Assembly: GCA_016748015.1 (NCBI GenBank)
Contig: JAAOMT010000112.1
Span: forward strand, 124,644 to 188,643
Direction: 5' to 3'
Origin: Geosiphon pyriformis uo1
Lineage: Eukaryota; Fungi; Glomeromycota
DNA: 64,000 nt
The notes under the pieces were generated by a model, which worked only from the letters and a program-made list of their open reading frames with translations, had not been told where the DNA came from and searched no databases. Shown here one piece after another: positions 4,473 to 15,200 of this stretch; position 1 is the first letter of the stretch; each line of letters begins with the position of its first letter. The position numbers and the translations under genes are program-made.

Positions 4473-5004
4473 CATACTGACATTATCAAAATTATTTTTT
4501 CTGAATCAAATATTTGATTTTCTATAACTTTGTTGAATTTGAAGTTATAATTTTGACACTGCGCTAAATTACTATGTTTTTGATTAACAGACACTTGGGG
4601 CTGGTTTTTGTTTAGAGAAAATCTGTACATTTCGAGATGAAAACATTGATGTAATGATCTAAACAAATTCTTCGTTGGGTTACGCAGCATCAGTCCTATT
4701 TTCTTATAACAAAAAATATTTACCAAAAAAGCTTCATGTTAATTTTAGTTAATGTGATACCAAATTTTTTATTTTTTACAATTAAAAAATTAGAAATTTT
4801 ACTTGTTTAATGATAATGAAAATTTCAAAATTAATAAATTGATTAAAAATTATTACATATTCCAACTGTTTATATTTCAAGATCAAAGGTGATTGGTCCT
4901 CATTTGGGAAAATTTTGATCATATCATAAAACCCGCAGTTTCTATAGTTTTCCCGAATCCCTCTGTTTGCTTGGCATAAGCGAGTTGCAGATTTGCGCTA
5001 CAAG

Positions 5005-8511: not shown

Positions 8512-9739
8512 TTAAAAATTGTTCAGTAAGCCAAAGGCATTAGTCTGCTTCATTACTTTAGCAGCAAAATTAGATTCCGCTTTATCTATTCCTTCACCAC
8601 ATTCCCATCTCAAAAAGTCCAAAACTTTGAGCCGAATTTTATAATCTTGCATCACTTTGTTAATATTATCTTTTACAGACCCACCACCCGATAAACTTAT
8701 TTGTCTTAAAAGGACATTTTCATTAAGATACTCTTCCAAATTCGTGATGTCCTTCGGAATGGAGTCATCATTCTCATCCACATATTTAGGATTATAGCCA
8801 ACTACTTGACGCGCTAGATCTCGTCCCAACTTTTTGATGCTTTGTATTGAAAAATTAGTAATATTATTTTCGCTAGGGGTTAGAAGATCAGAAGATTGCA
8901 ACATGATAAGCCCGCCAATTTTCCCAGTTGTTGAATCATCTCCGTGAACATAACCGCCAGTGAAAATAGTTTTTCTAAATTCTGAAGTAACTGAATCGTT
9001 AAAATTTACAACAGCTGCTCGGCGCAAGGTAATGTTTTCTCCTAGTTTCCCAATCATTTCTTCAATCGATTCTTTAATGGTATTCACCAAGGGAAGCTGA
9101 CTGAAGGAAGAAGAGGAGGGATGAGGGAATATTGGAGCTGAGTGTAATAAAGAAACTGGAATCTTTTGTATTATAGGAGATTCTACAGGGGAGGTGGGCG
9201 AAATTAAAAGGGAAGTTGAAGCTATTTGGACAACGAGTTGTCGAAATAATATATTGCGAGACACAAAATCTGTTTCACAATTAACCTTGATCCATAAAAC
9301 GACCATCAATGAATAAAGAAAGAATTAACGCAGAGCCAACTCTAAATATCTTGAAATTCAATTGTTTGGACAAATCAGATTTGCGAATTGAAAAAGGTAA
9401 ACAGACCTCGACAATTGCACCCCTTTCGTTAGGAAGCAATCCACTAGCAGCTAATTCCCAATTCTTTGAAATCACTACACCAATAAGTCCTTCTCGGGTC
9501 AGACGGCCTTTAAGCTTTTCGGCCTTAGCGTGCCCACTTATTTTTGCGTCTTCAAAGACCCACGCCAATGCCTTTTCATAGTCATTCCCATTCTTTACTA
9601 ATGCTTCTTTGGCTTTTAATACACTAACTTGAGTTTCTTGGCGAAGTTTTTGAAGCAACTGTAAATTCGATTTCGTGCTATAGAAGCGGTTTAAAATTTT
9701 TGAAGTGTGGGCCAGTTGTTGAGGCAAACCACCTATCAT
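8512..9739 (-). CDS. Mitochondrial translation elongation factor Ts (2 exons)
   Basis: Presequence-like N-terminus, LRQETQ..KAKEAL, EGLIG, VE|VNCETDFVSRN, KLGENITLRR, GGYVHG, RWECGEGI. Confidence 0.93.
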
Positions 9740-9984: not shown

Positions 9985-12598
9985 TTAATCACCGTTGGTA
10001 TCAATTGAAAGTCTTTTTGCCTTTTCCAAATACCATTCCATTGAAAGGCCAGTGGAAGCTAAAACAAGGCCCAAAAATTCCGGGGCTGGCTGCAAAGGGC
10101 GACTAAGATATTCCGGATGATATTGAACCCCGACAAAAAAAGGAAGATCTAAAAGGATATTCATTACCAAATTTTGTTCAGTACCCAATAATCAAGAGAC
10201 CAAATTCGCAAATCATATACCTTGCATCTCGAAAATTTCCATATTATTTCCGACTGGATCACGAGCTATAAATGTCAAGCCTTTTTTTTCTAATTGCGCA
10301 AGATGATTGTCATTTATTTTGTAGTGGCTATGATGACGTTCTTTTATAACTTCTGATTTCCCTCGCTTCCAATTAACGGATTCGTATAATCGACCTAAAG
10401 GTTGAAATAAGGAAATCAATTTTCAAAAACATTTTTATTTGAAGAGGTTCAGCAAGAATAGAATATATACGAATTTTAGACCACGATTCAGATCCATTTT
10501 GGAAAATAATTTCTTGGACACCGATCCCTTGGTCATGATTAACGAAATTTCCCTTGGAGTCGTCGCCTTTAAGAATTTCTATTAACCCATTAAACAAATA
10601 TAAGTTTAAAGTACATGATGTTCATAATTAAGCCTTCGAGGAAGCGAGAAACCATATGTACCATTTATACCACAGACATTGCGAGAAAATTCGATAATGG
10701 CAGTTTGAAACCCAAGGCCAATTCCTGTAAAACGAAATGTAAGGAAATAAGTCTCGGAGTCGAGGAATAATATCTGGACAAAAACTTTTGTACCAAGGAA
10801 CGGTTTTCTCTGATTTCTTGCAAAATTTATGGCTGTTAATATTCCCTCAATTTCAAGGTGAGAAAATCCATCAGGTACAATAATGCCATTAGCCGAAAGC
10901 AGATTTTCCCATGCTTCGTGATGTTTATGTGGCTTTTTGATTTTGCTTTCTGACTCCAAATAGGAAACTTCAACGCACTAAGAAGTTAAATATTGATATT
11001 TTTAGCTGCTCAAGATAATTACTAGACAATTATCACGTGCTTACGTTGAGAATCAATCTTCTCCCACAAGCTATCGAGGCATGTTCAAGGGCTTGCACAA
11101 TAGAATTGTAAAGATCTTGTTGGTTGTTATATCTACCAACCAAAGCTATGGTGACCGTTTTTGTACAGTTATCATAGCTAGGGAGTGATTAAAATCTAAT
11201 GAGAATTATAGGGATCAACGCTGAATATTTTGAAGAGAGAGATACACACTCCGCGACAAGCTTTCTCCAGCTGCGTAGGAGTTCTTTCCCTTGTGCTACG
11301 CGTGTTTGGGAAACTTCAATGAGATCAAGTTGGAGGCGATTTGATAAAAAATCCAGAAAATTTGCGTTTTCCAGCGCAAGCGGTTGATGATAGCTTGTAG
11401 GGACCGAGTTAATAGGTATCACCTAAATTCAAATTTAATGTATGGTAAATAATTCAAAAGCGAAGATATAGGACGATTCCTTGAATAAATATGCTCACAT
11501 TTGTTGGCTCAAAACATATTTTTTCGCATACTTCATTATCCAAATCCCCTGAACAGAGACAGGCTATCTGATGTGAATAAAAGAATAAGAATTACTATGT
11601 TTGATATTTATTATATTTTCTTGAGAGGAACATACCAAATCAGGCGTAGTTCCATTAGTGATTAACGATCTATGACTATCAAAGGCAGGCTTCGTGATCG
11701 TAGCTACCGTGGTATTTGGCAGTGCGAGCAAAGGAACAACATGTACGAATGCAACATTTTCTGCTCCAACTTTTGCTTGCAATTCATCAATGGCTTCCAA
11801 CCATGTCTGAGCATCTGGCAAATCAATCTCGGCTCCCAGCTTAACGTATTATCGAGATAAAATGCATCAGTGGACAAGTTCTATGTATAAAAATCATCAG
11901 GTAGTAGCATGAACTAAAACCTCCAAAATGCAAACATCTGCGCCAGTTGCGGCATTTTGAATGAGCTCTTGCATTCTATCTGTGCCATGACCCACAAGCG
12001 TGACTGATCGCCCCAGGAAACCACCAGCGCGCTATCGGATCAACTATTGTTTAGAGAGTTATGGCGAACCAAAAAATTGATTATCTAACAGAGATTTAAT
12101 GTTTATTTGTCTTTTACCTTTCAATTTTTCAAGGTAAAAAGTAAAATAGATCAGATAGATCAAAAAATATAGTAATTTAGATCAAAAGCGAAGTGGGAAC
12201 TTTGAGAAATTGAGCATAAGATCGTGCAGTCATACGCGAAATTATTGGACGGTTGCTTACTATTTTACAGGATATAAAGGCGGTCGCAAGACTTTACATA
12301 CCTCTTTTTTTACTAAGTCGTCAAATACTTGTCCACTTGTGATGTAATGCTTTTTAGTGAGCTCTTTCTGAAGAAAACGTTCATAGTTGCCGAGCTCCTC
12401 GGCGACCACCCCACCGTCATTTAAAAGAAAAATGTTTCCAGGGTCAAGGTTTTTGCCATCAATCTGAATGAAAGGATCGATTCTCGCTGCTGTGACTTCC
12501 AACCCCAAACTTTTCAATAAGAGGCCAGTTGATGCGGCTAAAATTCCCTTTTTATAGCCGGCAATAATACCATAAGTAAAGAATATGTATTTTGTCAT
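9985..12598 (-). CDS. Highly divergent CTP synthase-like protein (candidate pseudoenzyme), multi-exon, frame apparently intact
   Basis: Colinear CTPS motifs: [104 protein letters not shown]. Confidence 0.9.
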
Positions 12599-13180: not shown

Positions 13181-13684
13181 TCAAAATCCCAATTCTTCCT
13201 TTGTCAACACGCCCAATTCTTCCTTGATCGGTTTCAATTCATCTAGATATGCGTTGTATTGGCTTACATTTTCAACTTTTTCTTTGAGACCTTCAAAGAT
13301 CCGCACTGCTGTCGGATAATCATTGACTCGTCTTGCTGCTTTCAAGGCAGCTTCAATCACAGAAGGTGCTGGGACTAAATCGTATGCAAAGCAGTTATTC
13401 AGGCCTCTTTGAAGTTCAAAAAGATCATCAACCCCTTCAAAAAATTTCACGTGACGTTCAGTGAACGCTTCAAATGAGTCGCCTTCGTGTTCGCTAGAAT
13501 AAGTACGGCTAGCTGAGAGGCAAAGAGGTGAGGTTGGTTTGGGTTATAAGTGAGCAAGGTTTAAACAACGAGCGGATTTACCGTTGAAAGCTATGAGTTG
13601 TCCTAGTCTAGAACGAGATGAGAACGGAAGTTTTAAAGGAAGTAGTTTGGGATTGATACGAGTGAGAAGCGTGAGTCGGTTCAT
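13181..13684 (-). CDS. COX6: Cytochrome c oxidase subunit VI (Va family), single exon with presequence
   Basis: ESFEAF-like motif, DLFELQRGLNNCFAYDLVPAPSVIEAALKAARRVNDYPTAVRIFEGLKEKVEN..ELKPIKEELGV; ATG at 13684 in frame. Confidence 0.95.
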
Positions 13685-14040: not shown

Positions 14041-15200
14041 ATGGCAGTAATTGGCAGGCGCATTCCCTTTTATATTGCAATATTACTTCTATTTCTCGTC
14101 GTTACAACCTTCTTTCTCATATATCCCCCATATCATTTCAAACAAAGCACAATAAACCCCTGGTTAGGTCCTAGTATTGCGATCGTCTTATTACTTGATA
14201 GAAATGATACATCTTCAGTAATATCGATAGAAGAAACCTTTGAGAATAAGAAAAAATATGCTCAAAAATTTGGTTACATCCTTGCTATAAAAAAGATGAA
14301 AGAGCAAGCTAGAGCACCTGTAAGTAAAATTTAAAGAATTTCAAGTTAATTGGAGGAGATCCTCAATAATTAACGTAATGAAGTTTCAAATTGAAATGTT
14401 AAGACTAATATCTATATTTCTCGATTAAATACTTTTTAAAACGTTTCTAATAAAATAAAACATTATTTCTCTAAATTAATTATCAGACATGGGCCAAAAT
14501 ACCAGCCTTGCTTGAAACAATGGAAGATCTTCCTTCTGTAGACTGGCTATGGTGGATTGACGCAGTAAGTCTTCTCCCGGTTATTTAATTCATAAATCGA
14601 TTTCTTAATTCATATTTAATAATTATTAATTTCATCTTAAAAGTCAGCAATAATTACGAACTCTTCATTGCCGATTACCACGAACATACTTCATCAAATA
14701 GATTCGACACATTATGAAGATCGTCAATTATTAATAGGATATGATTGTTTTGGAATCAATACCGGATCTTTCTTAATACGAAATTCTGCTTGGTCAAAAA
14801 AATTTTTAAGAACAGTATATGGTCCAAAATTTTTGGATTATCCCAACGAAGAAAGTGTTATGGAAAAATTAATCGAGGAAGAAGCAATTGAAGTTGCCGA
14901 GAAAGTCTTTGTCATAAAATTGGTAATTCTTCTAAATTTTTAATTGCATTTTCATCTTTCACTTAAAATTAATTTTATTATATTCTTTAGCGCATTTTAA
15001 ATTCTTTGCCACCCACTGTCTGTGAACAAAAAGATCGCGGCGTAGATAGATATACCTGGCACAAAGGTGATTTTGTAATTAATTTATCCGGATGTGGAAA
15101 TACTTTGAATTGTGATAATATTACCAGAGATGTATGGAGGCATCTGGGCACGGAAGGACATAATGATTTGTCATCATCAACAAAACACAAAGGTCCTTGA
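14041..15200 (+). CDS. Glycosyltransferase family 34 (Mnn10/Gma12-like), type II membrane, 4 exons
   Basis: N-terminal TM helix, ENKKKYAQKFGY, WAKIPAL, WLWWIDA, DCFGINTGSFLIRNSAWS, WHKGDFVINLSGC. Confidence 0.88.

Follow-up and report, generated by a model that had tools for sequence, protein, structure and literature searches.

Geosiphon pyriformis and related glomeromycotan fungi probably keep an ancient CTP synthase-derived pseudoenzyme under purifying selection

CTP synthase (CTPS; EC 6.3.4.2), a textbook example of an allosteric enzyme, forms filaments and is a drug target. Among trypanosomatids, dead paralogues of metabolic enzymes are known: the prozymes of AdoMetDC and deoxyhypusine synthase form heteromers with the live enzyme and thereby activate it. 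Pseudoenzymes derived from glutamine amidotransferases (GATases) have also been described, namely the herpesvirus vGAT proteins, which are PFAS homologues and act on host signalling (PMC12282450). Here we report on a degenerate CTPS homologue encoded on the minus strand at 9985–12598 of a 64,000-nt stretch of the Geosiphon pyriformis genome (the window, to which all coordinates refer unless another sequence is named). We consider it probable that this gene encodes a lineage-restricted, ancient CTPS-derived pseudoenzyme kept under purifying selection, and that it is not a decaying gene, since the copy occurs with the same alterations in Ambispora and Paraglomus, again under purifying selection.

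Three-frame translation and splice-site inspection placed the ATG at 12598 and the stop codon at 9985–9987, with 11 exons that join into a 1680-nt coding sequence for 559 aa without internal stops. The ten introns are all GT-AG, the first being 270 nt long and the remainder 67–83 nt. The two-domain architecture of CTPS, PF06418 followed by the class-I PF00117, is present in this gene: in exon-by-exon Pfam comparisons, CTP_synth_N (PF06418) matched exons 1–3 with 95.4, 20, and 23 bits, and GATase (PF00117) matched the frames of exons 7 and 11 with 27 and 20 bits. The deposited protein, "hypothetical protein G9A89_003927 [Geosiphon pyriformis]" (P0001, 589 aa), is mis-spliced at two places: the 69-nt in-frame intron 7 (10725–10793) is read as coding, and the exon 8/9 joint (within 10471–10724) differs. 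It is the 559-aa model, and not the deposited one, that is backed by a spliced transcript, a 2559-nt contig of public run X1 (2019) from which all ten introns have been removed exactly at the modelled junctions, and we present it as a correction of G9A89_003927. Library, family, and fold scans took single exons, deposited P0001, or orthologues as input, and the joined 559-aa model was used in local scripts only.

The departures from canonical CTPS are spread over both domains. Exon 1 (12302–12598, residues 1–99), which carries the strongest PF06418 match and whose junction with exon 2 (12302/12031) is found in the X1 contig, has a degenerate P-loop reading [10 protein letters not shown] for GGVxSGxGKG (12545–12574), a 3-residue deletion that takes out the canonical HGE segment including its His (local reading DGKNLDPGN, 12434–12460), and AEE for the acidic DLD (12395–12403). 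Exon 2 (11921–12031, residues 100–136) reads [12 protein letters not shown]...VCILE and has lost 8 residues that canonical CTPS has. The ELGGTVGDIES-type motif, encoded by 11921–11923 together with 11810–11839, reads [11 protein letters not shown]. Exon 3 (11636–11839, residues 137–204; [25 protein letters not shown]) covers the former UTP/CTP pocket and the tetramer-interface region, both remodelled, and has ITKPAF for KTKPTQ (11681–11698). Exon 4 (11499–11567, residues 205–227) has a 4-residue deletion and reads IACLC, with Leu for the Arg of canonical IACRC, and exon 5 (11250–11422, residues 228–285), which includes the linker region, has NSVPTSYH for the canonical (K/H)DVSS ATP-contact motif.

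The GATase-derived domain begins in exon 6 (11045–11177, residues 285–329). In exon 7 (10794–10977, residues 330–391), the oxyanion-hole motif PGGFG is replaced by PDGFS (10861–10875), and the nucleophile motif reads GIGLGFQ (10705–10724 plus the G at 10794), with a Gly codon, GGC at 10717–10719 in exon 8 (10662–10724, residues 391–412), at the position of the glutaminase nucleophile Cys. The lid loop in exon 9 (10471–10578, residues 412–448) lacks GGTMRLG through a 10-residue deletion, ERHRHRY has become ERHHSHY (10321–10341) in exon 10 (10221–10394, residues 448–506), and the triad motif YHPE is unchanged (10111–10122) in exon 11 (9985–10148, residues 506–559 plus the stop). The first-pass annotation of this stretch had traced an open spliced frame over both the synthetase and the GATase domains and had listed a series of motif changes; the frame holds, with its ten junctions in the X1 contig, and each listed change, including the Cys-to-Gly codon and the retained HPE, was correct by alignment and coordinates.

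A PF06418 search of the whole Geosiphon genome returned two loci only, the degenerate copy and a gene at 2574255–2577200 of a different contig (C718), deposited as G9A89_020197 (P0389). The motifs of the latter are all intact (GGVISGIGKG, DLDLG, ELGGTIGDFES, KTKPTQ, PGGFG, GICLGLQ, ERHRHRY, and YHPE), which rules out the degenerate copy as the sole CTPS of this genome, and a canonical CTPS was found in every genome carrying a degenerate copy. At the protein level, the Geosiphon degenerate copy is 45% identical to canonical fungal CTPS.

An exhaustive HMMER search with exon 1 against 1.84 billion protein representatives yielded two clusters at E < 1e-30, the Geosiphon protein itself and an orthologue from Paraglomus occultum (P0002), a fragment cut by a contig end that has the same derived motifs. 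Alongside this search, orthologues were identified by word-based searches and cluster look-ups, and those of Ambispora leptoticha (P0151, 557 aa) and Paraglomus brasilianum (P0270, 533 aa) are 59–62% and 52–57% identical to the Geosiphon copy, respectively. No degenerate orthologue beyond those of A. leptoticha, P. brasilianum, and P. occultum was found among the 1.84 billion representatives, and a metagenome scan for more divergent members added just one Paraglomus-like contig. Neither Ambispora gerdemannii nor any of the Glomerales or Diversisporales proteomes searched yielded the degenerate copy; Rhizophagus, Glomus, Funneliformis, Gigaspora, Diversispora, Acaulospora, Entrophospora, and others had canonical CTPS only, at most 40% identical to the degenerate copies. 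The separation of Paraglomerales and Archaeosporales is old by published dates, and the degenerate copy may provide a clean synapomorphy-like marker joining these two orders.

We compared the three full-length copies (Geosiphon, A. leptoticha, and P. brasilianum) at the 135 alignment columns that are invariant across 40 canonical eukaryotic CTPS. The Geosiphon copy retained 78 and departed at 57, and across the three copies 78 (Geosiphon), 81, and 71 columns were kept; canonical sequences in a leave-one-out control departed at no more than 8 (median 0). Alterations at 46 columns were common to all three copies, 26 of them to an identical state. The P-loop across the copies reads YGII(A/E)GY(K/Q)KG, with only the Lys retained, and the DLD position reads AEE, VEE, and VEE. 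All three copies have the 3-residue deletion of the HGE His, an 8-residue deletion in the loop after the start of exon 2, ELGAEID(L/P)PD and ITKPAF in place of the UTP/CTP-binding motifs, IAC(L/I/V)C without the Arg, PDGF(S/A) at the oxyanion position, the 10-residue deletion of the GTP-responsive lid GGTMRLG, and a degraded ERHRHRY. The nucleophile Cys position is occupied by Gly in Geosiphon and Paraglomus and by Ser in Ambispora, and the triad His and Glu are retained in Geosiphon and Ambispora, with His replaced by Arg in Paraglomus. In terms of the Escherichia coli enzyme, whose numbering and residue roles follow published work (K18, K40, H57, D72, E140, G143, G146, D147, K187–Q192, R211, K223, D240, and C379), the residues invariant in the 40 canonical sequences and lost here are G10, S14, G17, D70, D72, G143, G146, D147, K187, T191, Q192, R211, and D240, and H57 and the lid are lost as well.

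Substitution patterns indicate that purifying selection maintains this altered protein. Between P. occultum and P. brasilianum, compared over 170 codons that are unsaturated, nonsynonymous divergence (dN) was 0.010–0.012 and synonymous divergence (dS) 0.15–0.20, giving a ratio (omega) of 0.05–0.08; third codon positions accounted for 21 of the 25 exon differences, and exon identity was 95.1%, as against 75.4% for the three intervening introns. Geosiphon and Ambispora differed by a dN of 0.26–0.28 with omega about 0.11, dS being saturated. This divergence was uneven, with a dN of 0.15 for the synthetase half, 0.061 for exon 3, and 0.407 for the linker and GATase half. Of all exons, exon 3 is the one that differs least between degenerate copies (91% to Ambispora and 74% to Paraglomus) and most from canonical CTPS (33% identity). 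The strongly conserved part thus appears to be the synthetase-derived half, chiefly the remodelled pocket/interface exon, with relaxed constraint on the glutaminase half. Judged from tree path lengths, the degenerate copies evolve approximately 3.5–4 times faster than the canonical genes within the clade. The orthologues in three genera, the conserved splice structure, and the low omega rule out a recent pseudogene or lineage-private decay. The first-pass annotation had proposed a maintained non-catalytic paralogue and had suggested looking for a second canonical CTPS, for orthologues, and at dN/dS; the intact gene on C718, the same substitutions in Ambispora and Paraglomus, the omega values far below 1 between Paraglomus species, and the spliced transcript are all in line with that proposal.

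The predicted fold of the Ambispora orthologue is that of a full CTPS (predicted local distance difference test score, pLDDT, 86.9; predicted template-modelling score, pTM, 0.88), and its best structural match was yeast Ura8 (7RKH; template-modelling score, TM, 0.91). Model confidence was lowest in the former active-site loops (pLDDT 60–76). In scans against family models, P0151 (422.3) and P0270 (400.1) missed the TIGR00337 equivalog cut-off of 462.75, compared with 739.9 and 736.3 for the canonical proteins P0389 and P0152, and the orthologues exceeded the looser NF003792 cut-off (371–391 vs 308). Their Pfam scores were 177–191 bits for PF06418 and 79–84 bits for PF00117.

A careful maximum-likelihood tree of 43 sequences grouped the three degenerate copies together (100/100), with a stem 2.55 changes per site long. 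Their clade falls within Glomeromycotina (100/99), where its closest relatives are the canonical genes of Paraglomus, Geosiphon, and Ambispora, as a sister group (95/84). The degenerate copies also have three residues that otherwise occur only in these canonical genes. All ten introns match those of the canonical Geosiphon gene in position and phase, which, together with the nesting of the clade in Glomeromycotina, rules out a retrocopy or a foreign origin. Exon lengths are identical between the Geosiphon and Ambispora degenerate copies for 9 of 11 exons; the Paraglomus copy (L010, 5541–8097) has an extra intron within exon 1, which is also present in the canonical gene and has been lost in Geosiphon and Ambispora, and its exons 7 and 8 have been fused by loss of the intervening intron. 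In A. leptoticha, canonical CTPS (minus), COX5A (plus), and the degenerate copy (plus) follow one another within 7.6 kb, the canonical gene lying 1.6 kb from the degenerate one. COX5A is single-copy in the Geosiphon genome, and its last exon (13181–13450, minus strand; PF02284, 131.8 bits) lies directly upstream of, and outside, the degenerate gene on the same strand, as does the COX5A of A. leptoticha (L008, 8904–9563). From the shared intron positions and the gene order of Ambispora and Geosiphon, we conclude that the degenerate copy arose by local DNA duplication. At columns with 90% or higher conservation elsewhere, the canonical CTPS of the Paraglomus/Geosiphon/Ambispora clade carry 14 clade-specific substitutions and those of its glomeromycotan sister clade 3, and both duplicates seem to have accelerated following the duplication.

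The other neighbors of the Geosiphon copy are a weak match to the N-terminus of mitochondrial EF-Ts downstream (9281–9739, minus strand), a GT34 (GMA12/MNN10) glycosyltransferase gene (14041–14943, plus strand), of which a family member also adjoins the Ambispora copy, and a ribosomal protein L13 gene (15891–16502, plus strand). As a separate observation on the canonical genes, the CTPS of Geosiphon and Ambispora (P0389, P0152, and P0159) have an in-frame insert of approximately 80–100 aa immediately ahead of ERHRHRY in the GATase domain (L007, about 4511–4995, and C718). The insert contains much Asn, Gly, and Thr and is absent in Paraglomus and all other aligned fungi.

By its homology to an active family and its loss of residues essential for catalysis, the degenerate copy would count as a pseudoenzyme, and the orthologues, open frames, and omega well below 1 show that it is a maintained one. 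It is very unlikely to synthesize CTP, having lost the nucleophile, an oxyanion Gly, the lid, the His of the ammonia gate, and most UTP/ATP contacts. A local DNA-level duplication of the glomeromycotan CTPS gene preceded, on the tree, the split of Paraglomerales and Archaeosporales, and a burst of change then took out the glutaminase chemistry (the Cys nucleophile, an oxyanion Gly, the GTP-responsive lid, and the Args of ERHRHRY) together with the UTP/ATP contacts (the P-loop glycines, G143, G146, D147, K187, Q192, R211, and D240). Purifying selection has since preserved the gene's open frame and splicing and, it appears, its transcription. CTP would be made by the canonical paralogue, and the degenerate copy would act via its synthetase-derived half, in which the remodelled pocket/tetramer-interface segment is most constrained, with the GATase half presumably serving mainly as a structural body. 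The conservation indicates that the protein is in use, mainly, it would appear, through the synthetase-derived half.

Several observations weigh against this interpretation. That the protein is "dead" is deduced from its residues alone, and some of the residues for phosphoryl transfer are kept (K18, E140, K189, and K223) or conservatively replaced (K40 by Arg or Lys and D72 by Glu), so the protein may have a changed ATP-dependent chemistry. Grouping all canonical glomeromycotan genes together was not rejected by an approximately unbiased test (p = 0.117), and the duplication may therefore lie outside the crown canonical genes of Glomeromycotina and be somewhat older than its placement on the Paraglomerales plus Archaeosporales stem in the tree. 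The transcript junctions, which the first-pass annotation had named as a check, bear out all ten introns, but the sole contig differs from the genome in exon 2 by C>G at 11976 and by the 2 nt missing at 11977–11978, a frameshift that leads to a stop after 140 codons. The genome reading at 11976–11978 is the one conserved in the orthologues, and the deletion may be an error in the contig, or it may mark a null allele carried by some nuclei or isolates. The contig also extends 597 nt past 12900 into the upstream COX5A and is possibly a merger of two transcripts, and its depth is therefore uninformative on the expression level of the degenerate gene. Exon 3, being only 33% identical to canonical CTPS, argues against simple co-assembly via the canonical tetramer interface, and a co-evolution test of the canonical paralogue at the exon-3 region showed no enrichment (4/42 vs 10/220, p = 0.25). 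The 14 clade-specific substitutions of the canonical genes thus lend no support to heteromers. Apart from these points, the joining of COX5A to a CTPS-like mRNA could reflect read-through or overlapping untranslated regions.

As to what the protein does, the first-pass annotation had named co-assembly with or regulation of canonical CTPS, nucleotide sensing, and a new activity as candidate roles. Our tentative first choice, which we hold to be somewhat short of an even bet, is a prozyme-like non-catalytic subunit that would oligomerize with, and so modulate, the canonical CTPS; we place it first because the functional forms of CTPS are dimers and tetramers and because the dimer-side exons 1–2 are the most canonical-like in the synthetase half. 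Residues at the filament interface of yeast Ura7 (H360, W363, N364, D370, and W392; PMC8641951) were considered as evidence and set aside, since these positions vary in canonical glomeromycotan CTPS and degenerate copies alike and are therefore uninformative. Nearly as likely as the prozyme-like subunit is a neofunctionalized protein independent of CTPS, in which the synthetase domain would have acquired a new conserved ligand pocket or an ATP-dependent activity of amidoligase or kinase type on a substrate other than UTP. The replacements at the former active site are fixed and not drifting, as reflected in the 26 of 46 altered columns with an identical state and in the conservation of exon 3; K18 and E140, which are Mg/phosphate ligands, are retained, with Glu at D72 and Arg or Lys at K40; and the synthetase half is approximately 2.7 times more constrained than the GATase half, all of which would fit such a change. 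However, the Gly ahead of the P-loop Lys is Lys or Gln, and the adenine/ribose contacts R211, K239, and D240 are all lost, so ATP binding of the CTPS type is unlikely, with residue roles taken from published E. coli structures. The pocket segment is also the tetramer interface, so that its conservation fits a protein–protein role equally, and model confidence is lowest in precisely these loops; the fixed replacements in this exon may have created either a ligand pocket or a protein interface that canonical CTPS lacks, and fit both alike.

It is improbable, in our view, that the gene is a functionless duplicate in slow decay, a unitary pseudogene in the making whose open frame is a leftover. 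The faster evolution of the degenerate copies, the additional loss of the catalytic His in Paraglomus, the low conservation of GATase exons 9–10 (just 30–43%), the exon 2 frameshift in the transcript contig, and the absence from the A. gerdemannii, Glomerales, and Diversisporales proteomes would all be expected of decay. Frames that have stayed open in three genera over 10–11 exons, with conserved splice sites and intron positions, would not; nor would an omega of 0.05–0.12, the prevalence of third-position differences, the conservation of exons far above that of introns, or the synonymous nature of every one of the other three differences between transcript and genome (10517, 12520, and 12590). 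More improbable still is that the protein remains a CTP synthase, for example an NH3-dependent one with an unusual active site. The complete two-domain CTPS fold in the model of the Ambispora orthologue, the scores above the NF003792 cut-off, and the retained equivalents of K18, E140, T188, K189, P190, and K223 would be in keeping with activity, but scores fall below the equivalog cut-off, residues invariant in 40 canonical eukaryotic sequences are lost in addition to H57 and the lid, and each genome with a degenerate copy has a canonical CTPS.

Taking the two leading readings together, we lean toward the view that, in early-diverging mycorrhizal fungi, the protein either sets the activity or polymerization of canonical CTPS as an obligate prozyme-like subunit, or has had its synthetase domain re-tooled for a new, conserved ligand or reaction; if so, in both cases it would be the first protein derived from CTPS to have a function other than that of CTPS. 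The degenerate copy offers a natural experiment on what the CTPS scaffold could do once catalysis is gone, be it regulation of active CTPS, nucleation or capping of filaments, or binding of something new, and the replacement residues frozen at the former nucleotide pocket provide concrete positions for testing.

Nothing relevant emerged from full-text literature searches on pseudoenzymes of CTPS, inactive paralogues of CTPS, and CTPS in Glomeromycota, in agreement with the first-pass annotation, which knew of no described fungal pseudo-CTPS. Canonical fungal CTPS (Saccharomyces cerevisiae Ura7/Ura8, PDB 7RKH and 7RMC, and Geosiphon G9A89_020197) shares with the degenerate copy the PF06418 plus PF00117 architecture, the fold, as predicted for the Ambispora orthologue, and, in the case of the Geosiphon gene, the intron positions. 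The degenerate copy differs from it in lacking the glutaminase Cys and an oxyanion Gly, the glycines of the P-loop, the GGTMRLG lid, and both substrate motifs, KTKPTQ and GGTxGDxES. As with the herpesvirus vGAT, a GATase-family protein would here be functional after losing amidotransferase chemistry; vGAT, however, is viral, derived from PFAS and not from CTPS, and unrelated by descent to the Geosiphon copy. The trypanosomatid prozymes are likewise dead paralogues retained under selection together with an active enzyme whose family is metabolic and oligomeric. They belong to another enzyme family and lineage, and the heteromer formation and activation described for them are a hypothesis for the degenerate CTPS. 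Dead paralogues of metabolic enzymes are already known, and one derived from CTPS appears to be new.

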